From the NCBI GenBank assembly GCA_002269645.1, contig NIVC01001291.1, forward strand, positions 186,001 to 250,000: 64,000 bases of DNA. Reading direction: 5' to 3'. Every line of letters begins with the position of its first letter. Position 1 is the stretch's first letter. This DNA is from Macrostomum lignano (Eukaryota). This document shows positions 21,698 to 63,584 of the stretch, piece after piece. The notes beneath the pieces were generated by a model that worked only from the letters and a program-made list of their open reading frames with translations, ran no database searches and was not told where the DNA came from. A program made the position numbers and the translations under genes.

Positions 21698-22140
<443 letters not shown>

Positions 22141-22660
22141 GTACATAGATAGCACTCCAAGCGAACTCAGACAGTCAGCACCAAGTCCCAAAACTGCACC
22201 CAAACCCCTTTTCCCGGCTTCCAGGGATTCTGCAGCCAGTCTTGACTACAGCACCGGCAGCGGCGGCGGCAGCGGCGGCGGCAGCGGCAGAGGCGAAAAC
22301 AGGATATCCCTTTTCCAGGAATTCGGCGTTAACGACCCCCTCACCGTGGAGATGGATTCGGACACGGCCGCCTTTCTGTAAGCCCCAAGCACAGCCCCCG
22401 CGCTAATGCGCCACTAAAAGGCATAAAACCGCTGCCGGCCCCGGCAAACAGCAAATTGGTGCCACTCCAACCGGATCGAATTGCCCACCTGTGCAAACAA
22501 GCCGTTAAAGCTTTCCCTAATCCTGTTTTGCCAACCAACACTAATTGGAGAGTCCGATTGCGTTCCAACAGATTGATGGGCAGATATTGAAAACGGGGAT
22601 GCTTGAAGAGGGAAATATTGGGCTTGCTGAATAAACAAAAGGTATGGGATAGCATCGACT

Positions 22661-24477: not shown

Positions 24478-25601
24478 ATAGGCGGCCAACAACAGGAACT
24501 AGGTGGCCAACAACAGGAACCAGGCTGTCAACAACAGGAACTGAGCAACCAACAACAGGAACTAGGCTGTCAACAACAGGAACTGAGCAACCAACAACAG
24601 GAACTAGACAACCAACAACAGGAACTAGGCGGCCAACAACAGGAACTAGGCGGCCAACAACAGGAACTAGGCAACCAACACCAGGAACTAGGCAACCAAC
24701 ACCAGGAACTAGGCAGTCAACAACAGGAACTAGGCGGCCAAGAACAGGAACTAGGCTGTCAACAACAGGAACTGAGCAGCCAACAACAGGAACTGAGCAA
24801 TCAACAACAGGAACTGAGCAGCCAACAACAGGAACCTGAGCAGCCAACAACAGGAACCTGAGCAATCAACAACAGGAACTAGGCAGCCAACAACAGGAAC
24901 TGGGCAATCAACAACAGGAACTAGGCAGCCAACAACAGGAACTAGGCAGCCAACAACAGGAACTAGGCAACCAACACCAGGAACTAGGCAACCAACAACA
25001 GGAACTAGGCAACCAACAACAGGAACTAGGCAACCAACACCAGGAACTAGGCAACCAACAACAGGAACTAGGCAACCAACAACAGGAACTAGGCGGCCAA
25101 CAACAGGAGCTAGGCAACCAACAACAGGAACTAAGCAACCAACAACAGGAACTAGGCAACCAACAACAGGAACTAGGCAGCCAACAACAGGAACTAGGCA
25201 ACCAACAACAGGAACTAGGCAGCCAACAACAGGAACTAAGCAACCAACAACAGGAACTAGGCAGCCAACAACAGGAACTAGGCAACCAACACCAGGAACT
25301 AGGCAACCAACAACAGGAACTAGGCAACCAACAACAGGAACTAGGCAACCAACACCAGGAACTAGGCAACCAACAACAGGAACTAGGCAACCAACAACAG
25401 GAACTAGGCGGCCAACAACAGGAGCTAGGCAACCAACAACAGGAACTAAGCAACCAACAACAGGAACTAGGCAACCAACAACAGGAACTAGGCAGCCAAC
25501 AACAGGAACTAGGCAACCAACAACAGGAACTAGGCAGCCAACAACAGGAACTAGGCAACCAACAACAGGAACTAGGCAACCAACAACAGGAACTGGGCAA
25601 T
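24478..25601. repeat. 21-bp minisatellite (ctaggcaaccaacaacaggaa), ~53 copies
   Basis: Tandem copies. The + frame reads as ELGNQQQ heptads. Confidence 0.93.
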
Positions 25602-42395: not shown

Positions 42396-44166
42396 TATAT
42401 TTGCCTTTCCACTTTGAAACAGTGTAAGAGAATAAGAGTCATGGTCTATGAGAACCGCTCCCTGGCCTTCAGCCCGTCTGTCAGTAGCCCAGCTGACTTC
42501 CCAAACGGCTCTGAATGCAGTGCTCCCCTGAATTCCTGGGCAACCCCTGGGCGTTGTCTTCCTATTTAGACTTGAGTTTAGCAGCTGTCCTCTCAGGCGC
42601 TCCAGTTGAACGGGTCCGATATTCAGTTTTAAACTCGTATTAGTCTCGAGCTATTGAATGAGTTCGTTTTCAAATTTAAAGTAGAATTTACCACTAACAC
42701 ACATCGGCTTCGTCGAAAGTTACTAGGATCTGGAGACAGAAATACAATATGCTTTATCACTCAATCGAAAGTGTTGTATTGATGGTTGTCTCGGGGTGGT
42801 TTGGTAGGTCTTCAGAATCCCATCGCTGCCACCAATGTTGTACCTGTGCTACCTACTCGGACAGCGCCAGCACAGTTAAATTGACTTTTCGTCCTTTTGA
42901 TCGGGAGTCTTCAATCGTAGCGTAGCTAGTGCTGCCACCAGTTCCTTCAGGTCTCGGCTTTCGATGAGGTGGGCTTCCCGTCGGAACAAAATAAACAAGT
43001 AAACGAACTCAGCACCGCGTGCAGATTTGAAGATTAACGAACAAGGCGTCTGGTCAGCAGATCCAGCTGGGCCCAGTGGGTGGTTGGGAAGGCGATGTAG
43101 GCCTCCTTTAGACTTGGGCGTCTATGTTTAGTCAGGCGTATTACAGACGGAAACATGGTAGCAGAAGAACTGAAACTGAAAGTGAAATCCTTGACGGAAA
43201 CAAGGGTGAGGGGGCCCCGTACATATATGCTGGGAATCCCCATTGCACCATTGTGCGCCAGATAGCGTGACTCAGTATCTATTTTTAGAACTGACGTCAC
43301 CTCCCGCCTTTGAGAAGGCCGGGGTCGTGATCCCCGTAAACACAGGCCAGCGAGTGTAGTAAACATGTTTACTCCAGGACTCCAGGACTTTTGGACTCCA
43401 GGAAAACACGGCTTTTCATGTGACTTGCTCAAATGACAGAGGAAAACAGGACCACCAATAGTGACCTCAAGACTGGAGTAAAAGGAAGAGCAGACCACAG
43501 CACAGATGTCCATGGCTGCAAACACGGCTTGGAGATTGGAGCTCGTAGACAAGTTTTCGTCGGTTTTTAAAACAGTCAAGAAATTTGTTGCTAGACTTGA
43601 GCTATTGCCAGTTCCCTTGATTGAATCTTGATTATCGAGATTTAAACTTAAATTTGCATGCTAAAAAGCTCAAATACGGAGATGCCTTTCTGGAACCGGA
43701 TCGTTACTCAATTCAACGGCTAAAAAATTCAACCATAGTTTTTAATATCATATACGTGCAAATTTTTGCTGGAGAGCCGTTGCTTTTCAGACTGGCTCCC
43801 AAAAAAGTTCCACTGCAATAGAGACTCAGGCTATGCAGAAATGAGTTACATAGCACTATTGGGCTACTTTCTTCGTCAAATCAATTCATTTGATAATGTT
43901 GTTTGCTCTGCGCCCTCGAGACCATACCAAGGACAACTAAGGACCATACTTGCCTGACTGTATCGCCAGAACTGACTCTAGTTCAGTGGCCTTTGTTTGT
44001 TCAGGCTGGTCAAATGTTTTGGAGAAAAATGTACACTTGTGACCAGCGATTCCCTGTATATTGATTTGCTGGCAGCTATACTTTGCAAAGCTCATAAAAG
44101 CAGCGCACCAGAAAACTAACAGAGATCGGACTGATTCTGCGGCAAACTGTTCAGCTGCACAAAGTA

Positions 44167-46184
44167 ATGGGCGAAGGGATCCCGGCTACTAACGACTTTA
44201 TCAGAGTTCGCTCCAGCAACAGAATTTCACTTCTTGCAGGTAATCGGGTGCTGCCGAGTCAGAACGATACAAACTTGAAAGAGTTGTTCAACATGGAATC
44301 AGCAGAGGCGGCGCTGGCTGCTCTGGTCGATGACGACCCTGACGCCTTCATGCGAGCTTTGAAGCCGGACCTGTCGGGAAGGCTCGCCCAGCCTCTGGTC
44401 GACGTGACCGAAAGCCACGAGATCCGGTGTCGCTTGCCGAGAAGTCGCCGAAAGTGGGGCTTCGTCAGTCTGCAGTTCGGATACGCGATCCACCTGGCGA
44501 TTCTGCTGCAGTCTGTGCGAGTGTTCGAGGCTCTGTTGGAAGACAGCTCCGAGCACGCGGCTCAGCTCGAGCTCGACGGCAGCACCGTTGTACACAGTCT
44601 GGCTCGCTGCCAGATGTACGCGCCGAGGTTCAAGCGAGCCAAGCGTCTGGAGACGGCGCTCCTCTCGACGCTGAGTAGAGAGCCTCGTCTGCTAGACAGG
44701 CTGGTCACTCAGGAGGACTCGAGCGGTCTCCGACCTCTGGAGGCGTGCGTGAAGTTCGCTGCATTCCGACTGGCCCGCAAGATGTTGCACCTGCCGAACT
44801 ATCTGTTGAAATCGGAGACTCGATCCGGCGGCTGGGCCGTCCGTCTCTACGACCTCACCGACTACGACCTGTGTCACGGGAGCCGGTGCAACTCGAGTCC
44901 TCTGCACCTGCTCACCTATGTAGCGTCGAGTCAGGTCGAGTCGCTCAAGAAGTCCAAGCTGATGGAGGACCCTCTCATCCGACAGTGGCTTCGGTTGACG
45001 TACCGTCAGACTCGAGCGATCACATTTCTGAGGCTGTTGGTAATGAGCGTTCCAACATCGGTATTTCTTCTCACAGCCGTGAACGAATCAATCATGCTGA
45101 CGGTGGCCTGTTTTGGCAACCTCATTCACTGCAACCGAGCAACATTTTCTGCTGCAAAATCATTAGGATTCAATGCCAGCGTTTTGAGCAATTTAACCAT
45201 TTATTTTAAGTTTTTTTATCAGCAAAAAATAAAGTCAAAAAGCTGTGCAGAATTTCTTGAATCCGTCGACATAAACTTTCTGGTGATTAGTCTCGTGACT
45301 GCCTTCATGTGCGTCACTGCGGCTCTGAAGACTGGATTCTCTGCGCTTGAACACAAAAATAAGAAAAAATATTGACTGCGGACAACTGGTCGCTGCTTGA
45401 CAGATTTGTTCGACGGGCCATCTTTGATTTTTATCACTTTGTTGCAATCGCGAGTGGCATCTGCTTTCTAGTTGTCGCGACGTTCCTGAGGTCCGATAAT
45501 TTCTATGAAAATTTGTATCCAAGCGACCAAAGCAACGGTAGAGCTGTGGAGCAACTGTTCATTGGGTCCAACACTCTCTTCATCGCGTTCACACTGCTGC
45601 ACTTTGCGCAGTACATGGAGATCGTGACGAAGTCGGTCGGGAAGCTCTTCTTCACCTTCCACTGCATGCTGTCCAGCTTCCTGGCCGCGCTGCCGCTGCT
45701 GTTCTACTGGATCATTCTCTTCAGCCTGGACTTCTTCATCTTGGTCGACTCGCCCGACTTCGAGACCGGCCTGTTGTCGCTCTACTCGTCGGTCAAGGTC
45801 ATCCTCAACATGATCACCTTCAGCTTGGACAGCGTAATGGTTCTCATCATCCACGTGCTGTTCTTCGTGTTTGTGGGCCTCAACCTGCTGAACTTTCTCA
45901 TCGCGTTCGTCACGGAGACGTTCCAGCGGTGCATCAGCGACTTCGATGTGGCCTTCGACCTGCTGCGACTTCTGACAGCGTTGAAGACGTTTCGGTACTT
46001 CGGGTTCGTGTTTCGGTGCAAGCACTGGCTCGAGGTGAGGTCTCACGGCAGCTGTAGACGTCGGGTTATCGTTGATGTTGTTCAACCGGTGTTCAAGAGG
46101 CTGTACTCGAAAAGTGAATTCAGGCGGAAGCAGCGAAATTTTAGATCCTGTAGTCGAGAGATGGAATCTTTGCCGGATATTTAA
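44167..46184 (+). pseudogene. TRPV5/6-like channel, copy 3 (type A), -1 frameshift in an A-run near 45365
   Basis: ORFs 44167-45375 and 45372-46184. aag(A6)t versus aag(A7)t in intact copy 1. Probable true start ATG 44293, since GT-AG intron 44164-44239 contains the ORF-caller ATG. Confidence 0.8.
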
Positions 46185-46276
46185 TGCATTCTTTTAGAGA
46201 TTTTCGACGACTTTCTAAATTTTGTGCCCGTGCGCTTGCCCTGCCAAAGTGCACTCTGCTCCGTATTTGTTTTTGA

Positions 46277-47018
46277 TGTGATAGGCTCAGCGGTGTAAGC
46301 CGCTTAGCCCTTGGGTTGTCTGCGCGCTGGTTGGCTGGGCCGCCCTGTTTGGCCCTCCTCCCGGGCTGCCCTCCCCCAGCTGCGCCGTGATTGGCCGGTG
46401 GGTGGCTGGGCCGGGGGTGGGGCGGGGGTTGGGGCGGGGGGGAGCCCCCGGCCCCGGGGGGTCGTGGCCTTTTAAGGCGCGGCCGGGGCGGGTGGCTGTC
46501 GGCCCGTGGTTGTGTTGGTTTGCCGCACTCTACAACGCAGGCCCAGAGCGCCGATTACAGCGTCTTTAGACCGTCCTTCCCCTAACACATACGCAATAAA
46601 CGTTGACCATCGGGTCCGCCAGCCGCGAGCAGACCTCAGCTACGATTTATTGACCGCACGCGCAAGGGCGAGCTATCCGCGAAGTAAGTCACTGCCTTGT
46701 CTCTTCATTTCGGGAGCTGTAGCAGGGACATTCCGTGTGTCCTGACGCCGACTCAGGGTGGACTAGGTCAGGTAGTCAGCTAGGGGCCACCCTGTACTGT
46801 AAGCCCGCTGTACATAGACGCCAGCTTGTGTGCCCTGACGCCCTGCTAAAGGTGATCGACATCACAGCGTCCCTAAGCGTGTGCCGGCCACTTGGGTGCG
46901 CCCTGACGCCCCAGACCTAGGGTCCCGTGCGGACACTCGCGCCCCGACGCAGGCCAGCACGGGCCCGCGTACTCTGACCCTCGTAGGTGCACCCTTCCTG
47001 AGAGTCGCGAGTACAACA
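46277..47018 (+). mobile_element. solo-LTR-like GC-rich element, copy 2
   Basis: Homologue of 38908-39655 within the duplicated unit. Flanked by TGA on both sides. Confidence 0.35.
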
Positions 47019-47819
47019 TGAACCTTAGAGCGCAAAACAACATTGCAGTTTCATATTTATGCGTCATTCGTTTTACACTATTTTCCTTTGCAAAAGTCCC
47101 ATCCCATATCTCTTTCAAATGTGCTTTCTTAAAGTTTTTCTGGAAACCTTTTAAATCTTGGATTAACTTCTCTGCTGCTTTGAAGTGGCCCTTATTGTAC
47201 TACGTGTAATTCCTTTACAATCGGTAAATTATTGTACAAGCGTCGTAATCTACTATAAAAATTCTAAGCGCGATTCTGTGATAAGCATCCAAGAGTCGCT
47301 AGGAGCAAGTGCTAATTTCGTCATTTAGTATTTCGGTACAACCTTTAATTGATTGCTATAAACTGCCAATAAATATTGAACGTCTCAGCCTTTTATCTAA
47401 CCTTCATTTGTAACCTTCCAAATTGGTCGGTACGTACGCTCGTAGCAATAGCTGCTGAACACTCGCCTTCCAGGGTTTATAATGAAGCTGATTTCACTCG
47501 CGGGTGAAAACTACTCGTAGTACTCAACAGAAACTTACGATTAAATAGTTGAATATACGAGCGTATGTTGGCTCAAAGTACGTTTTATTCGTGAATGCAA
47601 AATATTCAAGCAGTGTACTCGTAGATGTACGGACTGAGACGGGAGAAAACCGAGGTAAACGACACAACATTCTGCGCAATGACTAAGCAGTATGGAGAAA
47701 TATTAGGAAAGCTGAATCGCCTGCCTCTAATCAAGTTAATTCAGCTAAACATCGCGAATCAAGCTTCTAAACAAAGGATTTTGCCATGAAGGTGTTCGCT
47801 GGTTTAGACGATTAGGACA

Positions 47820-49760
47820 TTATTGCCTTTTAAAAGCCGGTTGAACAACTTCAACGACCACCCGACGTCTGCAGATGCCATGAGATCTCACTTCTAGCCA
47901 GTGATTGCACCGGGGTACAAACTTAAAGTACCGAAACGTCTTCAGCGCTGCCAGAAGCCGCAGCAGGTCGAACGCCACGTCGAAATCGCTGATGCACCGC
48001 TGGAACGTCTCCGTGACAGACGCTATGAGAAAGTTCAACAGGTTGATGCTGACAAACATAAAGAATGCGAAATGAATAATGAGAACGATGGAACTGTCTA
48101 GGTTGAAGTTGATCATGTTCAGTATGACTCTCACGGATGAATACAAAGATAGAGAACCAGTGCTAAAGTCTTGCGTGTCAACCAGGATGAAGAAAATCAA
48201 GCTAAACAAAATTATCCAAAAGTAAAGCAGAGGCATGGAAGCCAGGAAACTTGTCATCATGCTGTGAAATATGAAAAACAGTTTCCCAATGCCTCTTGAT
48301 ACAATCTCCAAATACTGGGAATACTGCAAGAGAACGGATGCGATAAATAAAGCATTCGAGCCGAGAAACAGCTGCTCGGTGACCCAGCCAGACCGCTGGT
48401 TGATGGGGAGCAGTGTCCGGTACCACCCTGAGTAGTTCGCCCAAAAGTTGGTGAACAGAACAACTAGGAAGCAGGAGCTGCTGCCAATAGTTACTGCCAG
48501 GTAAACGTCGAACATTGTTATACGGACGAATCGGTGCGTGGGTCGCCAGTTGTCGGCTGTGAGAAGCTTCATCCGCTGACTCCGCTCCAGGAGCCACAGA
48601 ACAATCTTCACGCAGGCTACGATGACTTTGAAGACCAGAACCGCAAAAATCACACAGGTGTTTACAAATATTGCCTCGCCGATTCTTGAGCACTTAGTCT
48701 GCTTAACTGTCTGATCATTAAACACTTTCCAAAAGAGGGTTGAGTTCAACAACACGGTCTCATTGAAGCCTAGCTTCTCTGCGGCTGTGAAGGTGGCTTG
48801 ATTACAGTGAATCAGCAAACCAAAACTTGATACAAGTAGCATTACATATTGGCTAAACACCGTCAACAAAAATGCTGCTGGCGGTATGCCCATCACCAAC
48901 AGCCTCAGAAATGTGATCGCTCGAGTCTGACGGTACGTCAACCGAAGCCACTGTCGGATGAGAGGGTCCTCCATCAGCTTGGACTTCTTGAGTGACTCGA
49001 CCTGACTCGACGCTACATAGGTGAGCAGGTGCAGAGGACTCGAGTTGCACCGGCTCCCGTGACACAGGTCGTAGTCGGAGAGGTCGTAGAGACGGACGGC
49101 CCAGCCGCCGGATCGAGTCTCCGATTTCAACAGATAGTTCGGCAGGTGCAACATCTTGCGGGCCAGTCGGAATGCAGCGAACTTCACGCACGCCTCCAGA
49201 GGTCGGAGACCGCTCGAGTCCTCCTGAGTGACCAGCCTGTCTAGCAGACGAGGCTCTCTACTCAGCGTCGAGAGGAGCGCCGTCTCCAGACGCTTGGCTC
49301 GCTTGAACCTCGGCGCGTACATCTGGCAGCGAGCCAGACTGTGTAAAACGGTGCTGCCGTCGAGCTCGAGCTGAGCCGCGTGCTCGGAGCTGTCTTCCAA
49401 CAGAGCCTCGAACACTCGCACGGACTGCAGCAGAATCGCCAGGTGGATCGCGTATCCGAACTGCAGACTGACGAAGCCCCACTTTCGGCGACTTCTCGGC
49501 AAGCGACACCGGATCTCGTGGCTTTCGGTCACGTCGACCAGAGGCTGGGCGAGCCTTCCCGACAGGTCCGGCTTCAAAGCTCGCATGAAGGCGTCAGGGT
49601 CGTCATCGACCAGAGCAGCCAGCGCCGCTTCTGCCGATTCCATGCTTTGTTTCCGTTCCCGAATCATGTTTGCACTTTTTGGTGCCTTCTGCTGCGTTTC
49701 GATTTGCTTTAAAATTTCTCGCATACCGAAGTCAGCCAGAAGTGTTTTATCTGCGTCCAC
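47820..49760 (-). CDS. TRPV5/6-like channel, copy 4 (type B), intact
   Basis: Uninterrupted frame with the same domain order and pore motif VILNMINF. Probable start ATG 49724 (MREILKQ). Confidence 0.85.
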   Translation of the reverse strand: MDADKTLLADFGMREILKQIETQQKAPKSANMIRERKQSMESAEAALAALVDDDPDAFMRALKPDLSGRLAQPLVDVTESHEIRCRLPRSRRKWGFVSLQFGYAIHLAILLQSVRVFEALLEDSSEHAAQLELDGSTVLHSLARCQMYAPRFKRAKRLETALLSTLSREPRLLDRLVTQEDSSGLRPLEACVKFAAFRLARKMLHLPNYLLKSETRSGGWAVRLYDLSDYDLCHGSRCNSSPLHLLTYVASSQVESLKKSKLMEDPLIRQWLRLTYRQTRAITFLRLLVMGIPPAAFLLTVFSQYVMLLVSSFGLLIHCNQATFTAAEKLGFNETVLLNSTLFWKVFNDQTVKQTKCSRIGEAIFVNTCVIFAVLVFKVIVACVKIVLWLLERSQRMKLLTADNWRPTHRFVRITMFDVYLAVTIGSSSCFLVVLFTNFWANYSGWYRTLLPINQRSGWVTEQLFLGSNALFIASVLLQYSQYLEIVSRGIGKLFFIFHSMMTSFLASMPLLYFWIILFSLIFFILVDTQDFSTGSLSLYSSVRVILNMINFNLDSSIVLIIHFAFFMFVSINLLNFLIASVTETFQRCISDFDVAFDLLRLLAALKTFRYFKFVPRCNHWLEVRSHGICRRRVVVEVVQPAFKRQ

Positions 49761-51531
49761 TATATTTGCCTTTCCACTTTGAAACAGTGTAAGAGAATAA
49801 GAGTCATGGTCTATGAGAACCGCTCCCTGGCCTTCAGCCCGTCTGTCAGTAGCCCAGCTGACTTCCCAAACGGCTCTGAATGCAGTGCTCCCCTGAATTC
49901 CTGGGCAACCCCTGGGCGTTGTCTTCCTATTTAGACTTGAGTTTAGCAGCTGTCCTCTCAGGCGCTCCAGTTGAACGGGTCCGATATTCAGTTTTAAACT
50001 CGTATTAGTCTCGAGCTATTGAATGAGTTCGTTTTCAAATTTAAAGTAGAATTTACCACTAACACACATCGGCTTCGTCGAAAGTTACTAGGATCTGGAG
50101 ACAGAAATACAATATGCTTTATCACTCAATCGAAAGTGTTGTATTGATGGTTGTCTCGGGGTGGTTTGGTAGGTCTTCAGAATCCCATCGCTGCCACCAA
50201 TGTTGTACCTGTGCTACCTACTCGGACAGCGCCAGCACAGTTAAATTGACTTTTCGTCCTTTTGATCGGGAGTCTTCAATCGTAGCGTAGCTAGTGCTGC
50301 CACCAGTTCCTTCAGGTCTCGGCTTTCGATGAGGTGGGCTTCCCGTCGGAACAAAATAAACAAGTAAACGAACTCAGCACCGCGTGCAGATTTGAAGATT
50401 AACGAACAAGGCGTCTGGTCAGCAGATCCAGCTGGGCCCAGTGGGTGGTTGGGAAGGCGATGTAGGCCTCCTTTAGACTTGGGCGTCTATGTTTAGTCAG
50501 GCGTATTACAGACGGAAACATGGTAGCAGAAGAACTGAAACTGAAAGTGAAATCCTTGACGGAAACAAGGGTGAGGGGGCCCCGTACATATATGCTGGGA
50601 ATCCCCATTGCACCATTGTGCGCCAGATAGCGTGACTCAGTATCTATTTTTAGAACTGACGTCACCTCCCGCCTTTGAGAAGGCCGGGGTCGTGATCCCC
50701 GTAAACACAGGCCAGCGAGTGTAGTAAACATGTTTACTCCAGGACTCCAGGACTTTTGGACTCCAGGAAAACACGGCTTTTCATGTGACTTGCTCAAATG
50801 ACAGAGGAAAACAGGACCACCAATAGTGACCTCAAGACTGGAGTAAAAGGAAGAGCAGACCACAGCACAGATGTCCATGGCTGCAAACACGGCTTGGAGA
50901 TTGGAGCTCGTAGACAAGTTTTCGTCGGTTTTTAAAACAGTCAAGAAATTTGTTGCTAGACTTGAGCTATTGCCAGTTCCCTTGATTGAATCTTGATTAT
51001 CGAGATTTAAACTTAAATTTGCATGCTAAAAAGCTCAAATACGGAGATGCCTTTCTGGAACCGGATCGTTACTCAATTCAACGGCTAAAAAATTCAACCA
51101 TAGTTTTTAATATCATATACGTGCAAATTTTTGCTGGAGAGCCGTTGCTTTTCAGACTGGCTCCCAAAAAAGTTCCACTGCAATAGAGACTCAGGCTATG
51201 CAGAAATGAGTTACATAGCACTATTGGGCTACTTTCTTCGTCAAATCAATTCATTTGATAATGTTGTTTGCTCTGCGCCCTCGAGACCATACCAAGGACA
51301 ACTAAGGACCATACTTGCCTGACTGTATCGCCAGAACTGACTCTAGTTCAGTGGCCTTTGTTTGTTCAGGCTGGTCAAATGTTTTGGAGAAAAATGTACA
51401 CTTGTGACCAGCGATTCCCTGTATATTGATTTGCTGGCAGCTATACTTTGCAAAGCTCATAAAAGCAGCGCACCAGAAAACTAACAGAGATCGGACTGAT
51501 TCTGCGGCAAACTGTTCAGCTGCACAAAGTA

Positions 51532-53549
51532 ATGGGCGAAGGGATCCCGGCTACTAACGACTTTATCAGAGTTCGCTCCAGCAACAGAATTTCACTTCTT
51601 GCAGGTAATCGGGTGCTGCCGAGTCAGAACGATACAAACTTGAAAGAGTTGTTCAACATGGAATCAGCAGAGGCGGCGCTGGCTGCTCTGGTCGATGACG
51701 ACCCTGACGCCTTCATGCGAGCTTTGAAGCCGGACCTGTCGGGAAGGCTCGCCCAGCCTCTGGTCGACGTGACCGAAAGCCACGAGATCCGGTGTCGCTT
51801 GCCGAGAAGTCGCCGAAAGTGGGGCTTCGTCAGTCTGCAGTTCGGATACGCGATCCACCTGGCGATTCTGCTGCAGTCTGTGCGAGTGTTCGAGGCTCTG
51901 TTGGAAGACAGCTCCGAGCACGCGGCTCAGCTCGAGCTCGACGGCAGCACCGTTGTACACAGTCTGGCTCGCTGCCAGATGTACGCGCCGAGGTTCAAGC
52001 GAGCCAAGCGTCTGGAGACGGCGCTCCTCTCGACGCTGAGTAGAGAGCCTCGTCTGCTAGACAGGCTGGTCACTCAGGAGGACTCGAGCGGTCTCCGACC
52101 TCTGGAGGCGTGCGTGAAGTTCGCTGCATTCCGACTGGCCCGCAAGATGTTGCACCTGCCGAACTACCTGTTGAAATCGGAGACTCGATCCGGCGGCTGG
52201 GCCGTCTGTCTCTACGACCTCACCGACTACGACCTGTGTCACGGGAGCCGGTGCAACTCGAGTCCTCTGCACCTGCTCACCTATGTAGCGTCGAGTCAGG
52301 TCGAGTCGCTCAAGAAGTCCAAGCTGATGGAGGACCCTCTCATCCGACAGTGGCTTCGGTTGACGTACCGTCAGACTCGAGCGATCACATTTCTGAGGCT
52401 GTTGGTAATGAGCGTTCCAACATCGGTATTTCTTCTCACAGCCGTGAACGAATCAATCATGCTGACGGTGGCCTGTTTTGGCAACCTCATTCACTGCAAC
52501 CGAGCAACATTTTCTGCTGCAAAATCATTAGGATTCAATGCCAGCGTTTTGAGCAATTTAACCATTTATTTTAAGTTTTTTTATCAGCAAAAAATAAAGT
52601 CAAAAAGCTGTGCAGAATTTCTTGAATCCGTCGACATAAACTTTCTGGTGATTAGTCTCGTGACTGCCTTCATGTGCGTCACTGCGGCTCTGAAGACTGG
52701 ATTCTCTGCGCTTGAACACAAAAATAAGAAAAAATATTGACTGCGGACAACTGGTCGCTGCTTGACAGATTTGTTCGACGGGCCATCTTTGATTTTTATC
52801 ACTTTGTTGCAATCGCGAGTGGCATCTGCTTTCTAGTTGTCGCGACGTTCCTGAGGTCCGATAATTTCTATGAAAATTTGTATCCAAGCGACCAAAGCAA
52901 CGGTAGAGCTGTGGAGCAACTGTTCATTGGGTCCAACACTCTCTTCATCGCGTTCACACTGCTGCACTTTGCGCAGTACATGGAGATCGTGACGAAGTCG
53001 GTCGGGAAGCTCTTCTTCACCTTCCACTGCATGCTGTCCAGCTTCCTGGCCGCGCTGCCGCTGCTGTTCTACTGGATCATTCTCTTCAGCCTGGACTTCT
53101 TCATCTTGGTCGACTCGCCCGACTTCGAGACCGGCCTGTTGTCGCTCTACTCGTCGGTCAAGGTCATCCTCAACATGATCACCTTCAGCTTGGACAGCGT
53201 AATGGTTCTCATCATCCACGTGCTGTTCTTCGTGTTTGTGGGCCTCAACCTGCTGAACTTTCTCATCGCGTTCGTCACGGAGACGTTCCAGCGGTGCATC
53301 AGCGACTTCGATGTGGCCTTCGACCTGCTGCGACTTCTGACAGCGTTGAAGACGTTTCGGTACTTCGGGTTCGTGTTTCGGTGCAAGCACTGGCTCGAGG
53401 TGAGGTCTCACGGCAGCTGTAGACGTCGGGTTATCGTTGATGTTGTTCAACCGGTGTTCAAGAGGCTGTACTCGAAAAGTGAATTCAGGCGGAAGCAGCG
53501 AAATTTTAGATCCTGTAGTCGAGAGATGGAATCTTTGCCGGATATTTAA
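51532..53549 (+). pseudogene. TRPV5/6-like channel, copy 5 (type A), same A6 frameshift as copy 3 (near 52730)
   Basis: ORFs 51532-52740 and 52737-53549. Probable start ATG 51658. Confidence 0.8.
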
Positions 53550-53641
53550 TGCATTCTTTTAGAGATTTTCGACGACTTTCTAAATTTTGTGCCCGTGCGC
53601 TTGCCCTGCCAAAGTGCACTCTGCTCCGTATTTGTTTTTGA

Positions 53642-54383
53642 TGTGATAGGCTCAGCGGTGTAAGCCGCTTAGCCCTTGGGTTGTCTGCGCGCTGGTTGGC
53701 TGGGCCGCCCTGTTTGGCCCTCCTCCCGGGCTGCCCTCCCCAGCTGCGCCGTGATTGGCCGGTGGGTGGCTGGGCCGGGGGTGGGGCGGGGGTTGGGGCG
53801 GGGGGGAGCCCCCGGCCCCGGGGGGGTCGTGGCCTTTTAAGGCGCGGCCGGGGCGGGTGGCTGTCGGCCCGTGGTTGTGTTGGTTTGCCGCACTCTACAA
53901 CGCAGGCCCAGAGCGCCGATTACAGCGTCTTTAGACCGTCCTTCCCCTAACACATACGCAATAAACGTTGACCATCGGGTCCGCCAGCCGCGAGCAGACC
54001 TCAGCTACGATTTATTGACCGCACGCGCAAGGGCGAGCTATCCGCGAAGTAAGTCACTGCCTTGTCTCTTCATTTCGGGAGCTGTAGCAGGGACATTCCG
54101 TGTGTCCTGACGCCGACTCAGGGTGGACTAGGTCAGGTAGTCAGCTAGGGGCCACCCTGTACTGTAAGCCCGCTGTACATAGACGCCAGCTTGTGTGCCC
54201 TGACGCCCTGCTAAAGGTGATCGACATCACAGCGTCCCTAAGCGTGTGCCGGCCACTTGGGTGCGCCCTGACGCCCCAGACCTAGGGTCCCGTGCGGACA
54301 CTCGCGCCCCGACGCAGGCCAGCACGGGCCCGCGTACTCTGACCCTCGTAGGTGCACCCTTCCTGAGAGTCGCGAGTACAACA
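53642..54383 (+). mobile_element. solo-LTR-like GC-rich element, copy 3
   Basis: Homologue of 46277-47018, offset by 7365 bp. Confidence 0.35.
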
Positions 54384-55184
54384 TGAACCTTAGAGCGCAA
54401 AACAACATTGCAGTTTCATATTTATGCGTCATTCGTTTTACACTATTTTCCTTTGCAAAAGTCCCATCCCATATCTCTTTCAAATGTGCTTTCTTAAAGT
54501 TTTTCTGGAAACCTTTTAAATCTTGGATTAACTTCTCTGCTGCTTTGAAGTGGCCCTTATTGTACTACGTGTAATTCCTTTACAATCGGTAAATTATTGT
54601 ACAAGCGTCGTAATCTACTATAAAAATTCTAAGCGCGATTCTGTGATAAGCATCCAAGAGTCGCTAGGAGCAAGTGCTAATTTCATCATTTAGTATTTCG
54701 GTACAACCTTTAATTGATTGCTATAAACTGCCAATAAATATTGAACGTCTCAGCCTTTTATCTAACCTTCATTTGTAACCTTCCAAATTGGTCGGTACGT
54801 ACGCTCGTAGCAATAGCTGCTGAACACTCGCCTTCCAGGGTTTATAATGAAGCTGATTTCACTCGCGGGTGAAAACTACTCGTAGTACTCAACAGAAACT
54901 TACGATTAAATAGTTGAATATACGAGCGTATGTTGGCTCAAAGTACGTTTTATTCGTGAATGCAAAATATTCAAGCAGTGTACTCGTAGATGTACGGACT
55001 GAGACGGGAGAAAACCGAGGTAAACGACACAACATTCTGCGCAATGACTAAGCAGTATGGAGAAATATTAGGAAAGCTGAATCGCCTGCCTCTAATCAAG
55101 TTAATTCAGCTAAACATCGCGAATCAAGCTTCTAAACAAAGGATTTTGCCATGAAGGTGTTCGCTGGTTTAGACGATTAGGACA

Positions 55185-57227
55185 TTATTGCCTTTTAAAA
55201 GCCGGTTGAACAACTTCAACGACCACCCGACGTCTGCAGATGCCATGAGATCTCACTTCTAGCCAGTGATTGCACCGGGGTACAAACTTAAAGTACCGAA
55301 ACGTCTTCAGCGCTGCCAGAAGCCGCAGCAGGTCGAACGCCACGTCGAAATCGCTGATGCACCGCTGGAACGTCTCCGTGACAGACGCTATGAGAAAGTT
55401 CAACAGGTTGATGCTGACAAACATAAAGAATGCGAAATGAATAATGAGAACGATGGAACTGTCTAGGTTGAAGTTGATCATGTTCAGTATGACTCTCACG
55501 GATGAATACAAAGATAGAGAACCAGTGCTAAAGTCTTGCGTGTCAACCAGGATGAAGAAAATCAAGCTAAACAAAATTATCCAAAAGTAAAGCAGAGGCA
55601 TGGAAGCCAGGAAACTTGTCATCATGCTGTGAAATATGAAAAACAGTTTCCCAATGCCTCTTGATACAATCTCCAAATACTGGGAATACTGCAAGAGAAC
55701 GGATGCGATAAATAAAGCATTCGAGCCGAGAAACAGCTGCTCGGTGACCCAGCCAGACCGCTGGTTGATGGGGAGCAGTGTCCGGTACCACCCTGAGTAG
55801 TTCGCCCAAAAGTTGGTGAACAGAACAACTAGGAAGCAGGAGCTGCTGCCAATAGTTACTGCCAGGTAAACGTCGAACATTGTTATACGGACGAATCGGT
55901 GCGTGGGTCGCCAGTTGTCGGCTGTGAGAAGCTTCATCCGCTGACTCCGCTCCAGGAGCCACAGAACAATCTTCACGCAGGCTACGATGACTTTGAAGAC
56001 CAGAACCGCAAAAATCACACAAGTGTTTACAAATATTGCCTCGCCGATTCTTGAGCACTTAGTCTGCTTAACTGTCTGATCATTAAACACTTTCCAAAAG
56101 AGGGTTGAGTTCAACAACACGGTCTCATTGAAGCCTAGCTTCTCTGCGGCTGTGAAGGTGGCTTGATTACAGTGAATCAGCAAACCAAAACTTGATACAA
56201 GTAGCATTACATATTGGCTAAACACCGTCAACAAAAATGCTGCTGGTGGTATGCCCATCACCAACAGCCTTAGAAATGTGATCGCTCGAGTCTGACGGTA
56301 CGTCAACCGAAGCCACTGTCGGATGAGAGGGTCCTCCATCAGCTTAGACTTCTTGAGCAACTCGACCTGACTCGACGCTACATAGGTGAGCAGGTGCAGA
56401 GGACTCGAGTTGCACCGGCTCCCGTGACACAGGTCGTAGTCGGTGAGGTCGTAGAGACGGACGGCCCAGCCGCCGGATCGAGTCTCCGATTTCAACAGAT
56501 AGTTCGGCAGGTGCAACATCTTGCGGGCCAGTCGGAATGCAGCGAACTTCACGCACGCCTCCAGAGGTCGGAGACCGCTCGAGTCCTCCTGAGTGACCAG
56601 CCTGTCTAGCAGACGAGGCTCTCTACTCAGCGTCGAGAGGAGCGCCGTCTCCAGACGCTTGGCTCGCTTGAACCTCGGCGCGTACATCTGACAGCGAGCC
56701 AGACTGTGTACAACGGTGCTGCCGTCGAGCTCGAGCTGAGCCGCGTGCTCGGAGCTGTCTTCCAACAGAGCCTCGAACACTCGCACGGACTGCAGCAGAA
56801 TCGCCAGGTGGATCGCGTATCCGAACTGCAGACTGACGAAGCCCCACTTTCGGCGACTTCTCGGCAAGCGACACCGGATCTCGTGGCTTTCGGTCACGTC
56901 GACCAGAGGCTGGGCGAGCCTTCCCGACAGGTCCGGCTTCAAAGCTCGCATGAAGGCGTCAGGGTCGTCATCGACCAGAGCAGCCAGCGCCGCTTCTGCC
57001 GATTCCATGCTTTGCTTCCTTTCCCGAATCATGTTTGCACTTTTTGGCTCTTTCTGCTGCGTTTCGATTTGCTTTAAAATTTCTCGCATACCGAAGTCAG
57101 CCAGAAGTGTTTTATCTGCGTCCACTATATTTGCCTTTCCACTTTGAAACAGTGTAAGAGAATAAGAGTCATGGTCTATGAGAACCGCTCCCTGGCAGAC
57201 AGACAGAAATACAATATGCTTTATCAC
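55185..57227 (-). CDS. TRPV5/6-like channel, copy 6 (type B), intact
   Basis: Uninterrupted frame. Probable start ATG 57089. The upstream MIKHIV extension arises from a 263-bp spacer deletion and lies 5' of the putative acceptor. Confidence 0.85.
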   Translation of the reverse strand: MIKHIVFLSVCQGAVLIDHDSYSLTLFQSGKANIVDADKTLLADFGMREILKQIETQQKEPKSANMIRERKQSMESAEAALAALVDDDPDAFMRALKPDLSGRLAQPLVDVTESHEIRCRLPRSRRKWGFVSLQFGYAIHLAILLQSVRVFEALLEDSSEHAAQLELDGSTVVHSLARCQMYAPRFKRAKRLETALLSTLSREPRLLDRLVTQEDSSGLRPLEACVKFAAFRLARKMLHLPNYLLKSETRSGGWAVRLYDLTDYDLCHGSRCNSSPLHLLTYVASSQVELLKKSKLMEDPLIRQWLRLTYRQTRAITFLRLLVMGIPPAAFLLTVFSQYVMLLVSSFGLLIHCNQATFTAAEKLGFNETVLLNSTLFWKVFNDQTVKQTKCSRIGEAIFVNTCVIFAVLVFKVIVACVKIVLWLLERSQRMKLLTADNWRPTHRFVRITMFDVYLAVTIGSSSCFLVVLFTNFWANYSGWYRTLLPINQRSGWVTEQLFLGSNALFIASVLLQYSQYLEIVSRGIGKLFFIFHSMMTSFLASMPLLYFWIILFSLIFFILVDTQDFSTGSLSLYSSVRVILNMINFNLDSSIVLIIHFAFFMFVSINLLNFLIASVTETFQRCISDFDVAFDLLRLLAALKTFRYFKFVPRCNHWLEVRSHGICRRRVVVEVVQPAFKRQ

Positions 57228-58609
57228 TCAATCGAAAGTGTTGTATTGATGGTTGTCTCGGGGTGGTTTGGTAGGTCTTCAGAATCCCATCGCTGCCACC
57301 AATGTTGTACCTGTGCTACCTACTCGGACAGCGCCAGCACAGTTAAATTGACTTTTCGTCCTTTTGATCGGGAGTCTTCAATCGTAGCGTAGCTAGTGCT
57401 GCCACCAGTTCCTTCAGGTCTCGGCTTTCGATGAGGTGGGCTTCCCGTCGGAACAAAATAAACAAGTAAACGAACTCAGCACCGCGTGCAGATTTGAAGA
57501 TTAACGAACAAGGCGTCTGGTCAGCAGATCCAGCTGGGCCCAGTGGGTGGTTGGGAAGGCGATGTAGGCCTCCTTTAGACTTGGGCGTCTATGTTTAGTC
57601 AGGCGTATTACAGACGGAAACATGGTAGCAGAAGAACTGAAACTGAAAGTGAAATCCTTGACGGAAACAAGGGTGAGGGGGGCCCGTACATATATGCTGG
57701 GAATCCCCATTGCACCATTGTGCGCCAGATAGCGTGACTCAGTATCTATTTTTAGAACTGACGTCACCTCCCGCCTTTGAGAAGGCCGGGGTCGTGGTCC
57801 CCGTAAACACAGGCCAGCGAGTGTAGTAAACATGTTTACTCCAGGACTCCAGGACTTTTGGACTCCAGGAAAACACGGCTTTTCATGTGACTTGCTCAAA
57901 TGACAGAGGAAAACAGGACCACCAATAGTGACCTCAAGACTGGAGTAAAAGGAAGAGCAGACCACAGCACAGATGTCCATGGCTGCAAACACGGCTTGGA
58001 GATTGGAGCTCGTAGACAAGTTTTCGTCGGTTTTTAAAACAGTCAAGAAATTTGTTGCTAGACTTGAGCTATTGCCAGTTCCCTTGATTGAATCTTGATT
58101 ATCGAGATTTAAACTTAAATTTGCATGCTAAAAAGCTCAAATACGGAGATGCCTTTCTGGAACCGGATCGTTACTCAATTCAACGGCTAAAAAATTCAAC
58201 CATAGTTTTTAATATCAATATATGAGCACCTTTTTGCTGGAGAGCCGTTGCTCTTCAGAGTGGCTCCCAAAAAGTTTCGCTGCAATAAACTCAGGCTATG
58301 CAGAAATAAGTTACATAGCATTATTAGGCTACTTTCTTCGCCAAATCAATTCATTTGATAATGTTGTTTGCTCTGCGCCATCGAGACCATACCTGCCTGA
58401 CTTTATCGCTAGAACTGACTCTAGTTCAGTGGCCTTTGTTTGTTCAGGCTGGTCAAATGTTTTGGAGAAAAATGTACACTTGTGACCAGCGATTCCCTGT
58501 ATATTGATTTGCTGGCAGCTATACTTTGCAAAGCTCATAAAAGCAGCGCACCAGAAAACTAACAGAGATCGGACTGATTCTGCGGCAAACTGTTCAGCTG
58601 CACAAAGTA

Positions 58610-60532
58610 ATGGGCGAAGGGATCCCGGCTACTAACGACTTTATCAGAGTTCGCTCCAGCAACAGAATTTCACTTCTTGCAGGTAATCGGGTGCTGCCGA
58701 GTCAGAACGATACAAACTTGAAAGAGTTGTTCAACATGGAATCAGCAGAGGCGGCGCTGGCTGCTCTGGTCGATGACGACCCTGACGCCTTCATGCGAGC
58801 TTTGAAGCCGGACCTGTCGGGAAGGCTCGCCCAGCCTCTGGTCGACGTGACCGAAAGCCACGAGATCCGGTGTCGCTTGCCGAGAAGTCGCCGAAAGTGG
58901 GGCTTCGTCAGTCTGCAGTTCGGATACGCGATCCACCTGGCGATTCTGCTGCAGTCCGTGCGAGTGTTCGAGGCTCTGTTGGAAGACAGCTCCGAGCACG
59001 CGGCTCAGCTCGAGCTCGACGGCAGCACCGTTGTACACAGTCTGGCTCGCTGCCAGATGTACGCGCCGAGGTTCAAGCGAGCCAAGCGTCTGGAGACGGC
59101 GCTCCTCTCGACGCTGAGTAGAGAGCCTCGTCTGCTAGACAGGCTGGTCACTCAGGAGGACTCGAGCGGTCTCCGACCTCTGGAGGCGTGCGTGAAGTTC
59201 GCTGCATTCCGACTGGCCCGCAAGATGTTGCACCTGCCGAACTATCTGTTGAAATCGGAGACTCGATCCGGCGGCTGGGCCGTCTGTCTCTACGACCTCA
59301 CCGACTACGACCTGTGTCACGGGAGCCGGTGCAACTCGAGTCCTCTGCACCTGCTCACCTATGTAGCGTCGAGTCAGGTCGAGTCACTCAAGAAGTCCAA
59401 GCTGATGGAGGACCCTCTCATCCGACAGTGGCTTCGGTTGACGTACCGTCAGACTCGAGCGATCACATTTCTGAGGCTGCTGGTGATGAGCGTTCCAACA
59501 TCGGTATTTCTTCTCACAGCTGTGAACGAATCAATCATGCTGACGGTGGCCTGTTTTGGCAACCTCATTCACTGCAACCGAGCAACCTTTGCCGCCGCTT
59601 TTCGGGCAGGCTACAACACATCGTCTCTTTCCAACACGACGCTGTACCATGAGATTTTTAACAGCCAGTCGGTAAAGAATTATAGTTGCGGTGAATTATT
59701 TGACTCGATGCTTTTGAGCTATTTAATGATAACATTTGTCTCCGTGTTTCATATGGTCATTATGCTCATCAAGTTGGTGCTCTATTTTGTTGAGTGCCAG
59801 CGAAAGATAAGGACTGTGGCGCCCATCGACAGCTCAACTGGGCGCTTTGTGCGCCGCTCGACTTTTGATTTCTATCAGGCGGTGGCTTTCGTAAGCGGCA
59901 TCAGCTTTTTTATATTCGCTTCAGCACTGCAACTAAAAAATTTTTATGAATACTTTGAGCCAAGAGGTGTAATGGAACAGCTTTTAATTGGGTCCAACAC
60001 TCTCTTCATCGCGTTCACGCTGCTGCACTTTGCGCAGTACATGGAGATCGTGACGAAGTCGGTCGGGAAGCTCTTCTTCACCTTCCACTGCATGCTGTCC
60101 AGCTTCCTGGCCGCGCTGCCGCTGCTGTTCTACTGGATCATTCTCTTCAGCCTGGACTTCTTCATCTTGGTCGACTCGCCCGACTTCGAGACCGGCCTGT
60201 TGTCGCTCTACTCGTCGGTCAAGGTCATCCTCAACATGATCACCTTCAGCTTGGACAGCGTGATGGTTCTCATCATCCACGTGCTGTTCTTCGTGTTTGT
60301 GGGCCTCAACCTGCTGAACTATCTCATCGCGTTCGTCACAGAGACGTTCCAGCGGTGCATCAGCGACTTCGATGTGGCCTTCGACCTGCTGCGACTTCTG
60401 ACAGCATTGAAGACGTTTCGGTACTTCGGGTTCGTGTTTCGGTGCAAGCACTGGCTCGAGGTGAGGTCTCACGGCAGCTGTAGACGTCGAGTGGTCGTCG
60501 AGGTTACTCATCCGGTTTTCAAGAAGTTTTAA
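58610..60532 (+). CDS. TRPV5/6-like channel, copy 7 (type C, chimeric), intact
   Basis: Type-A N-terminus and pore region with a distinct central segment (~59591-59986) and a short tail (VFKKF-stop). AATAAA at 60591. Probable start ATG 58736. Confidence 0.85.
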   Translation: MGEGIPATNDFIRVRSSNRISLLAGNRVLPSQNDTNLKELFNMESAEAALAALVDDDPDAFMRALKPDLSGRLAQPLVDVTESHEIRCRLPRSRRKWGFVSLQFGYAIHLAILLQSVRVFEALLEDSSEHAAQLELDGSTVVHSLARCQMYAPRFKRAKRLETALLSTLSREPRLLDRLVTQEDSSGLRPLEACVKFAAFRLARKMLHLPNYLLKSETRSGGWAVCLYDLTDYDLCHGSRCNSSPLHLLTYVASSQVESLKKSKLMEDPLIRQWLRLTYRQTRAITFLRLLVMSVPTSVFLLTAVNESIMLTVACFGNLIHCNRATFAAAFRAGYNTSSLSNTTLYHEIFNSQSVKNYSCGELFDSMLLSYLMITFVSVFHMVIMLIKLVLYFVECQRKIRTVAPIDSSTGRFVRRSTFDFYQAVAFVSGISFFIFASALQLKNFYEYFEPRGVMEQLLIGSNTLFIAFTLLHFAQYMEIVTKSVGKLFFTFHCMLSSFLAALPLLFYWIILFSLDFFILVDSPDFETGLLSLYSSVKVILNMITFSLDSVMVLIIHVLFFVFVGLNLLNYLIAFVTETFQRCISDFDVAFDLLRLLTALKTFRYFGFVFRCKHWLEVRSHGSCRRRVVVEVTHPVFKKF

Positions 60533-61679: not shown

Positions 61680-63584
61680 GGGATAGCGACGTTTGCCTGC
61701 GGGACGTTTGCCAGCCGACGTTTGCCTGCGGGAAGTTTGCCAGTCGACGTTTGCCAGCCGACGTTTGCCAGCCGACGTTTGCCTGCGGGACGTTTGCCAG
61801 CCGACGTTTGCCTGCGGGACGTTTGCCTGCGGGACGTTTGCCAGCCGACGTTAGCCAGCCGACATTTGCCAGCCGACGTTTGCCAGCCGATGTTTGCCAG
61901 CCGACGTTTACCAGCCGAAGTTTGCCTGCGGGACGTTTGCCTGCAGGACGTTTGCCTGCAGGACGTTTGCCTGCAGGACGTTTGCCAGCCGACGTTTGCC
62001 AGCCGACGTTTGCCTGCGGGACGTTTGCCTGCAGGACGTTTGCCTGCAGGACGTTTGCCAGCCGACGTTTGCCAGCCGACGTTTGCCAGCCGACGTTTGC
62101 CTGCGGGACGTTTGCCTGCAGGACGTTTGCCTGCAGGACGTTTGCCTGCAGGACGTTTGCCAGCCGACATTTGCCAGCCAACTGCTATATATTTAGCTAT
62201 ATATATTTATGCTATATTTAGCAGTTGTAACATTATAAAAACTAAATATATACTCGTAAAAAGTTTCGTGTATGCCCCACCATTTTCAGCTGAGTGGCGA
62301 AATAATATTTTATTGATTGCGAATAAAAATAAAACACCAACATTAGGAGTTTTGAGTAGTGCGTAATAATTTGAAAATTTGAATTCGGTGTTTGTGTTTG
62401 TGTTCGGTGTCTGGTTCTGTTCCCAGAACCAGAACCAATTTGTGAAGTATAACTTTTTGTCTCCATAACTAGAGGGAGATACATGCTATAAAGTTTTTAT
62501 TATTGAATGACAATCGCCAAGAAGAAAGTGAAAAATAGTGCTAAGTGAGGTTGTTAAGGCAGTCAAACATTCAACAGAATTAAATAGGCCCTAGTTATAC
62601 TACTGTTTTTCTTGGAAGATCCGAACCAATTCTAATTCTGGAATTGGTAATAGGCCTATGAAAAGCCTCTATGATCCGGCCTGAAGCCTCTTCACATTAC
62701 CAATTCCAGAACCAGAATCGGTTCGCATCTTCTAGAAAAACAGCTGTATAGGTCTAAATTTTTAACCCTGGTGTAGGCCTAAGCCTAATGAATCATGAAT
62801 TATGTCAATTTTAACTTTTTTGCATGTCATGGCTAAGCCTACATATATGTAGATTGTAGAACAATGTCACTGACTTTATTGTCAGTGACGCTTTGGTTCT
62901 GCTAGTTCTGCTAGTTTTGGTTACATCAGTTGCTTTGGTACATACATGCATGTTACTAAAACCTACCTAAAATATCAATAAGACGAAGAGCGTTCTAAGT
63001 TCTAAGTAGTTTGTTACGAGCGTAGTAACCTGTATATTTAATAGCAGTTAGTAGGCAGCGAAGTGGAATTATTAGTGCTATGTCCACAGTTTTCAAATGC
63101 AAGTTGTAAGCCTAGAGAGGGCATACTTCTTTAACCAATTGCCGCCTGCGACTGTCCGGCTGGCAAACGTCCCGCAGGCAAATGTCGGCTGGCAAACGTC
63201 GGCTGGCAAACGTCCCGCTGGCAAACGTCGGCTGGCAAACGTCCCGCTGGCAAACGTCGGCTGGCAAACGTCCCGCTGGCAAACGTCGGCTGGCAAACTT
63301 CCCGCAGGCAAACGTCCCGCAGGCAAACGTCGACAGGCAAACGTCCCGCAGGCAAACGTCGGCTGGCAAACGTCCCGCTGGCAAACGTCGGCTGGCAAAC
63401 GTCCCGCAGGCAAACGTCGGCTGGCAAACGTCCCGCTGGCCAACGTCGGCTGGCAAACGTCGGCTGGCAAACGTCCCGCTGGCCAACGTCGGCTGGCAAA
63501 CGTCGGCTGGCAAACGTCGGCTGGCAAACGTCCCGCAGGCAAACGTCGGCTGGTAAACGTCCGGCAGGCAAACATCGTAGACCC
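61680..63584. mobile_element. Foldback-like non-autonomous DNA transposon (~1.9 kb) with long modular TIRs
   Basis: Ends GGGATAGCGACGTTTGCC...GGCAAACATCGTAGACCC. Arms 61680-62180 and ~63150-63584 are built of 14/15-bp subrepeats (gacgtttgccagcc / gacgtttgcctgcgg) in inverted orientation. Direct repeat CTTGCAC at 61673-61679 and 63585-63591 (7 bp, or 8 bp with one shared C). Confidence 0.85.
62596..62750. mobile_element. small hairpin/MITE-like element inside the Foldback spacer
   Basis: ~55-bp imperfect inverted repeat (62596-62651 versus 62696-62750), TA at both ends, ~44-bp loop. Confidence 0.5.

Follow-up and report, generated by a model that had tools for sequence, protein, structure and literature searches.

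Relation to known TRPV channels and gene arrays

The epithelial Ca2+ channels TRPV5 and TRPV6 (PDB 5wo7, 7s88) combine ankyrin repeats with six transmembrane segments (S1-S6), a pore helix and a TRP helix, and both carry an N-glycan site in the first extracellular loop, between S1 and S2 (N358 in TRPV5, N357 in TRPV6; PMC4092855). TRPV homologues are known in the free-living flatworm Macrostomum lignano and are absent from parasitic flatworms (PMC5196486). We describe here an array of seven intronless copies of a gene of ~600 codons, encoding an ankyrin and six-transmembrane protein, for which the same architecture is predicted. The array spans 23.6 kb (36.9-60.5 kb) of the window, that is, of the whole 64,000-nucleotide stretch that was analysed, bases 186001-250000 of M. 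lignano contig NIVC01001291.1 (assembly GCA_002269645.1). Its copies, numbered 1 to 7 along the contig, follow the order A+ B- A+ B- A+ B- C+, where the letters stand for three sequence types and the signs for the strand. Copy 7, of type C, is a mosaic in which a deeply diverged block of 132 codons is embedded in sequence that is nearly identical to type A.

The window proteins share ~15% identity with TRPV5 and TRPV6, and the canonical TRP box and pore filter motifs of those channels are not recognisable in them. Spiralian TRPV-like relatives resemble the window genes in length and architecture, are often intronless and tandemly arrayed, and have an S1-S2 loop rich in N-glycosylation sequons; they may belong to TRPVL or to the unclassified clades related to TRPV that the literature describes (PMC12980990). 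Most of these relatives carry one cysteine in the loop and one in the pore turret, whereas the window proteins have two loop cysteines and no turret cysteine. The TRPV6 loop lacks these loop cysteines in a profile alignment, while the window loop has both of them together with two or three sequons. Elaborated, glycosylated and disulfide-bonded first extracellular loops that contact the pore region are found in TRPP (the polycystin/TOP domain) and TRPML channels. Those loops are folded domains of ~200 amino acids in group-2 TRP channels, while the window loop has 43 amino acids and belongs to a group-1, TRPV-like protein.

Partial interlocus conversion between tandem paralogues, which leaves one part of the protein identical and another diverged, has been described for mammalian TLR1/TLR6 (PMC2077338), and the same mosaic pattern is known from HMA4 of Arabidopsis halleri (bioRxiv 10.1101/2025.10.29.685298). 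Both systems are like this array in having mosaic divergence with sharp borders and one protein part that is kept identical. Unlike TLR1/TLR6 and HMA4, the array appears to have been homogenised in the ankyrin domain and the pore, the diverged island is half of a sensor-like domain, and inverted gene pairs are included.

Mosaic structure of copy 7

Copy 7 (58736-60532, plus strand) is an intact gene of 598 codons, counted from MESAEAAL. When compared with copy 1, mismatches number 9 of 855 positions in 58736-59590, 212 of 414 in 59591-59986 and 6 of 464 in 59987-60450. Identity to type A is thus 99% in the flanking parts (58736-59590 and 59987-60486) and 49% at the nucleotide level in the middle, and the excess of mismatches in the middle is statistically overwhelming (Fisher p = 1e-133). 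Copy 7 is a real recombination mosaic, as the preliminary description of this sequence had proposed, and the boundaries given there, after HCNRATF and before IGSNTLF, are accurate to within a few bases. A frameshifted version of type A was considered as the source of the middle block and was ruled out because the nucleotide identity is just 49%.

Four borders can be placed in the coding sequence (CDS), at nucleotides ~754, 855/856, 1251/1252 and ~1752. From the ATG to the first of these, types A, B and C are nearly identical; this tract (58736-59489, codons 1 to ~251) covers the ankyrin domain up to the start of S1, and the identity collapses at CDS nucleotide 754, within S1. The following short tract (59490-59590), which holds S1 and the first 10 residues of the S1-S2 loop, is the same in A and C and has 64-71% amino acid identity to B. 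The diverged block itself, hereafter the cassette, occupies 59591-59986 (codons 286-417) and has 39% amino acid identity to A and 31% to B. Beginning within the S1-S2 loop, most of which it includes, it runs through S2 (59690-59770), the S2-S3 linker, S3 (59849-59944) and the S3-S4 loop and ends after the first turn of S4. Neither S1 nor the greater part of S4 belongs to it, and both are constant between A and C, which makes the earlier term, a swappable S1-S4 cassette, a misnomer. A second A-like tract (59987-60486) encodes S4, S5, the pore helix, S6 and the TRP helix with ~1.3% mismatch to A. The last 46 nt (60487-60532) are copy 7's own: they are a diverged homologue of the A and B ends (~73-75% identity), stop where B stops and are followed by a unique flank. 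All of these tracts are on the plus strand.

The types are mosaics with three tiers of divergence. Synonymous divergence (dS) among A, B and C is 0.01-0.03 over codons 1-240. In S4-S6 it is 0.05 between A and C and saturated between A and B, that is, this part is alike in A and C and old in B. In the 132-codon core, dS is saturated in all three pairs, with a nonsynonymous divergence (dN) of 0.59-0.71. For the A/B pair, dN amounts to 0.18 in S4-S6, where dS is saturated, and to 0.59 in the cassette. Tracts with a dS of 0.01-0.05 thus give way to saturated sequence immediately outside, across sharp borders, as is expected of gene conversion.

Base composition follows the same division. The GC content at third codon positions (GC3) is 0.77-1.0 in the homogenised tracts and 0.27-0.6 in the cassette. 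Within S4-S6, GC3 reaches 0.83-1.0 in A and C (59987-60364 and its counterpart in copies 1, 3 and 5) versus 0.53-0.63 in B (47990-48390). Synonymous differences between A and B in S4-S6 have GC in A at 32 sites and AT in A at 2, a ratio that is reversed in the cassette (5:21). This pattern is consistent with biased gene conversion but is not proof of it.

Assignment to the TRPV-like family

Relatives of the array proteins were found by an exhaustive HMMER search with a profile of the three window sequences, which gave 124 proteins of similar length (best E = 1.5e-15, 18-24% identity). A word-indexed homologue search gave no match, either with one protein or with an 86-sequence alignment. Several of the relatives carry Ion_trans, PKD_channel and Ank Pfam domains. 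Named relatives include XP_064621355.1 from the nemertean Lineus longissimus and KAK2177882.1 from the annelid Ridgeia piscesae, and many others are derived from metagenomes. When the window profile was aligned by hhalign with a profile made from the relatives only, an E-value of 1.4e-41 was obtained over 514 columns. Among solved structures, the joint family profile matched TRPV6 best (E = 6e-52), followed by TRPV5 and TRPV3, and the alignment to TRPV6 extends from residue 164, in the ankyrin repeats, to residue 620, beyond the TRP helix.

With the family alignment as input, AlphaFold2 gave a model with a predicted local distance difference test score (pLDDT) of 83.9 and a predicted template modelling score (pTM) of 0.83, while the three window sequences alone gave an unusable model (pLDDT 37). 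The top Foldseek matches of the former are all TRPV1/2/3/5/6 structures, with TM-scores of 0.53-0.71 and full-length alignments. The ankyrin domain appears as helical repeats at pLDDT >90; relatives match the Pfam Ank family here, while the window proteins alone do not. Six transmembrane helices and a pore helix between S5 and S6 are indicated by hydropathy, by the AlphaFold helices and by the TRPV fold. In the model S1 extends to residue 275 and is followed by S2 (319-360), S3 (372-403), S4 (411-438), S5 (441-478), the pore helix (487-498) and S6 (509-543). After S6 comes a further helix (545-564), the sequence of which, FQRCISDFDVAFDLLRLL, contains no recognisable canonical TRP box. Residues that are key across the family are kept in the window proteins.

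Because the comparison with the relatives-only profile, the profile match to TRPV6 and the AlphaFold and Foldseek results agree, we take the array genes to be divergent TRPV-like channels of a spiralian family, in keeping with the channel type first suggested for them. The proteins would be expected to act as tetrameric cation channels.

The S1-S2 loop and its cysteines

The S1-S2 loop of copy 7 (59561-59689, plus strand) corresponds to codons 276-318. Its cysteines, Cys280 (59573-59575) and Cys318 (59687-59689), sit at the ends of the loop, adjoining S1 and S2, and its three sequons are NTS (59615-59623), NTT (59633-59641) and NYS (59678-59686). The loop is exactly 43 amino acids long in A, B and C, without indels, and all three types share Cys280, Cys318, Gly292 and the sequons at N294 and N300. 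The three loop strings in the preliminary description had been quoted correctly, as had the equivalent positions of two cysteines, one glycine and two sequons. Types A and B have two loop sequons each, and C has three, the third being NYS.

Family-wide counts for the loop and its cysteines were made over the 83 distant relatives in the alignment (from P0001-P0123). N-x-S/T sequons occur in these at 3.8 per 100 amino acids in the loop versus 0.45 elsewhere, an 8-fold difference, and at least one is present in 73 of the 83. In the window proteins, lysine and arginine together make up 7-12% of the loop versus 20-24% of the pre-S1 and S2-S3 segments. The homology to TRPV6, this positive-inside distribution of charges and the sequon density indirectly support placement of the loop on the extracellular or luminal side, and the extracellular position first ascribed to it agrees with this. 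At 43 residues the loop is not unusual, because the family median is 41 and the TRPV6 loop has ~34 residues in the profile alignment; the earlier description of it as unusually long does not hold. Nor does the contrast drawn with a merely short loop in TRPV5 and TRPV6, in which the same loop is glycosylated at the sites cited above.

In 49 of the 83 relatives, one cysteine is found in the loop and one in the pore turret. Relatives without a turret cysteine mostly have an even number of loop cysteines, in most cases two. The parity of loop cysteines co-varies with the presence of the turret cysteine (Fisher p = 7e-5), a result that holds when the loop boundaries are shifted. For spiralian TRPV-like channels as a family, this suggests that the loop is joined to the pore turret by a disulfide not described before. 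The window proteins belong with the few relatives closest to them (P0001, P0008, P0011 and P0023), which likewise have two loop cysteines and no turret cysteine. Cys318 aligns with the conserved loop cysteine of the family, before S2. Since the window proteins have two loop cysteines in place of a turret cysteine, and given the family parity and the alignment of Cys318, a Cys280-Cys318 bond within the loop is plausible and a reasonable inference. A glycosylated, disulfide-closed loop, as first proposed, thus has indirect support.

Distribution of variation within the cassette

Among A, B and C, 44% of the residues of the whole S1-S2 loop are invariant, and 33% of the part of it that lies in the cassette. 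The corresponding values are 11% for S2, 15% for the S2-S3 linker, 26% for S3 and 48% for S4. The statement that most residues other than the shared cysteines, glycine and sequons change is therefore correct for the cassette as a whole, but not for the loop, which is its best-conserved part. Values of dN are 0.51-0.68 for the loop versus 0.56-0.72 for the remainder of the cassette. The preliminary description had named a loop dN/dS equal to that of the rest of the gene as evidence against a recognition role, and within the cassette dN shows such equality. To judge from these comparisons, the loop behaves as a conserved scaffold and not as a variable surface.

In the consensus of the wider family, the 132-codon core is also the fastest-evolving stretch. 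This region evolves fastest, too, in an unrelated tandem array containing relative P0002 (L002, 6080-16897 of JAAUXT010115685.1, assembly GCA_013332975.1), which consists of three intronless paralogues of 642, 643 and 671 amino acids. There the S1-S2 loop and S2 are least conserved, at 17-20% identity versus 50-78% in the ankyrin and pore parts. In solved TRPV channels, ligand and lipid pockets are lined by the S2, linker and S3 part of the sensor-like domain, which is also coupled to gating. Functional differences between A, B and C would be expected chiefly in these three elements.

Organization of the array

Copies 1, 4, 6 and 7 have intact open reading frames (ORFs). Copy 1 (type A, 36923-38815, plus strand; 630 codons) has its own unique 5' flank. 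Copy 2 (type B, 40457-42278, minus strand) is broken by a 2-nt deletion at ~41020-41030, outside any homopolymer. Copy 3 (type A, 44293-46184, plus strand) has lost one A from an A7 run (45364-45369) and is frameshifted; copy 7 has a matching 5' spacer. Copy 4 (type B, 47820-49643, minus strand) is intact with 607 codons and has its S1-S2 loop at 48690-48818. Copy 5 (type A, 51658-53549, plus strand) is ~100% identical to copy 3 and has the same frameshift in the A7 run (52729-52734), and copy 6 (type B, 55185-57008, minus strand) is intact. The frameshift common to copies 3 and 5 could have arisen by real slippage or could be a sequencing error in the homopolymer.

The repeat unit of the array is 7,365 bp long and holds one A and one B gene. 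Units 42761-50125 (copies 3 and 4) and 50126-57490 (copies 5 and 6) are ~99-100% identical, the frameshift included, and the first unit differs by ~3%. That these two units are nearly identical could mean that they were duplicated very recently or that a path was duplicated in the assembly. Every B-to-A head-to-head spacer contains an ORF of 181 codons on the minus strand (43034-43579, 50399-50944 and 57501-58046) without a Pfam match, the conservation of which may result merely from duplication of the spacer itself.

Unique flanks are found on the 5' side of copy 1 and the 3' side of copy 7. Copy 7 is preceded by a spacer with 97% identity to the spacers that precede copies 3 and 5, and at CDS sites 9 and 15 copies 3, 5 and 7 are set together against copy 1 and type B. 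Spacers and 5' sites therefore group copies 3, 5 and 7, while the gene bodies, of which only three sequence types exist, group copies 1, 3 and 5. Elsewhere in the 64-kb window, neither additional copies or fragments of the gene nor another C cassette were found.

The A, B and C proteins were looked up as exact matches in ten start-codon versions, covering the seven TRPV-like ORFs, and none is present in a collection of 15 billion proteins. The product of the annotated neighbouring gene TTC26 is, unlike those of the array, present in that collection. The array thus appears to be unannotated in the public assembly.

Origin of the mosaic

The best overall explanation, and one we consider probable, is that non-allelic recombination and gene conversion act on the genes, keeping the ankyrin domain and the pore uniform but stalling at the fast-evolving core of the sensor domain. 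The ancestral order of the genes would have been A-B-C. Unequal crossing-over of C with A would then have generated the 7.4-kb A/B repeat, since copies 3 and 5 carry the spacer found upstream of C. Interlocus conversion, which may include arm-to-arm exchange between head-to-head B/A pairs, would keep the ankyrin domain uniform, as well as the pore in A and C. Conversion tracts would end at the borders of the sensor-domain core because this core, the least constrained part of the proteins across the family, has become too diverged for heteroduplex formation. With such a conversion-resistant core, a cassette would emerge without any dedicated swapping mechanism. We read it as a conversion-resistant island because the core is the fastest-evolving part both in the wider family and in the L002 array. 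As for copy 7, A-type sequence has most likely overwritten an old, resident paralogue on two sides. The S1-S2 loop would in this history have been retained as a conserved extracellular scaffold that bears two or three N-glycans and is closed by Cys280-Cys318.

Several points weigh against this account or the family assignment on which parts of it depend. The proportion of synonymous differences in the cassette is 0.8-0.95, and because dS is saturated there, dN/dS of the cassette is not computable. The conversion history is drawn from one genome and three sequence types; the transfer may also have run the other way, since an ectopic patch into an A copy could have produced a similar structure. 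Codon selection, rather than biased gene conversion, could be the source of the high GC3. Frameshifts are carried by three of the seven copies (2, 3 and 5). The window proteins alone match no Pfam family (E <= 1), and no PDB sequence was found at E <= 10 by phmmer with a single sequence or with the three-sequence profile, so that the assignment to the TRPV family is transitive, by way of the 83 intermediates. The AlphaFold model reaches a pLDDT of just 47-74 in the loop.

Copy 7 could alternatively owe its cassette to an ectopic patch: having begun as an ordinary A copy of the repeat, it would afterwards have taken up 396 bp by conversion from a distant, unseen type-C paralogue elsewhere in the genome. 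The sharp junctions on both sides and the 99% A-like flanks would be expected of such an event, and copy 7 does hold the A position of a fourth repeat unit behind the same upstream spacer. However, its last 46 nt are homologous to the other types without being of type A, end like B and run into a unique flank, which is how a resident paralogue would look, and a short patch at ~50% identity is a poor substrate for conversion. We consider a late patch rather unlikely for these reasons. The interpretation initially given to the locus was that the S1-S2 loop is a hypervariable surface for ligand recognition, with an S1-S4 block exchanged among genes under diversifying selection. In its favour are the three anciently diverged versions within otherwise near-identical genes, the conserved glycan and cysteine positions of an extracellular loop, and the L002 array, in which the loop is among the least conserved parts. 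Here, however, no other part of the cassette is as well conserved as the loop (44% of residues invariant versus 11-26% in S2, the linker and S3), which has no indels and does not exceed the rest in dN. Swapping is similarly at odds with the single mosaic, for which no donor was found, and with the position of S1 and S4 outside the block. We therefore judge both the variable recognition surface and the swappable cassette improbable, so that the initial interpretation is retained in part: the probably extracellular loop with its sequon and cysteine positions stands, and the length, the contrast with TRPV5/6, the variability and the swapping do not.

Two further explanations would remove the biological meaning of the pattern. 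Were the array assembled from reads of different paralogues, copy 7 would be a computational chimera; over 7.4 kb, the pairs 3/5 and 4/6 are ~100% identical, copies 3 and 5 share a homopolymer frameshift, and such a region is hard to assemble. Two in-frame switches 396 bp apart that yield an intact ORF of 598 codons would nevertheless be unlikely with reads of many kilobases, and the cassette sequence is single-copy in the window, which leaves an artefact very improbable indeed. Decay of unexpressed DNA would fit the three frameshifted copies, the absence of the genes from the public protein collection and the lack of a Pfam match by the proteins alone. On the other hand, the four intact ORFs of ~600 codons, the A/B dN values (0.18 in S4-S6 at saturated dS and 0.59 in the cassette) and the retention of key family residues point to long-term purifying selection, and we regard a decaying array as decidedly doubtful.

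A more far-reaching and quite unlikely possibility is that the array is a combinatorial sensor system in which an ancestral disulfide between loop and pore turret has also been moved into the loop. Conversion would then have been favoured for preserving identical assembly interfaces, by way of an ankyrin domain common to all types, and an identical pore in A and C. Heterotetramers built from three S2-S3 sensor modules could have mixed gating or ligand sensitivities, a logic of variable and constant parts achieved through concerted evolution and not through splicing. A relocated disulfide would have uncoupled the loop from the pore.

Returning to homogenisation around a diverged core, the array genes are new, unannotated TRPV-like members, and their mosaic is a new instance of partial conversion combined with unequal crossing-over. 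A highly divergent TRPV-like cluster is thereby added to a flatworm used as a model of regeneration, and a clean natural case of domain-resolved concerted evolution is provided for an ion channel. Types A and C amount to natural chimeras that differ only in 132 codons and the extreme C-terminus. Because they are alike elsewhere, the role of S2-S3 and the loop in gating is directly testable with this pair.

Neighbouring sequence

Near the left end of the window, a single-exon ORF on the minus strand (2677/2680-4350) encodes TTC26, an IFT56-like TPR protein, and matches an annotated M. lignano protein exactly. That protein is encoded on contig NIVC01001291.1, of which bases 186001-200350 agree without a difference with the first 14,350 bases of the window. 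Very large minisatellite arrays follow at 5051-11228, 16338-20039, 21698-22152, 22660-23702 and 24479-25600. Their units include one of 15 nt, repeated ~410 times over 6.2 kb, and one of 35 nt, repeated 106 times. The GC skew of these arrays is extreme, ranging from -0.38 to +0.41, and spurious ORFs of >1,600 codons arise in several of their reading frames. Just beyond the right-hand end of the gene array lie a minisatellite with a 14/29-nt unit (CGACGTTTGCCAGC...) and its inverted copy, at 61687-62179 and 63157-63577.

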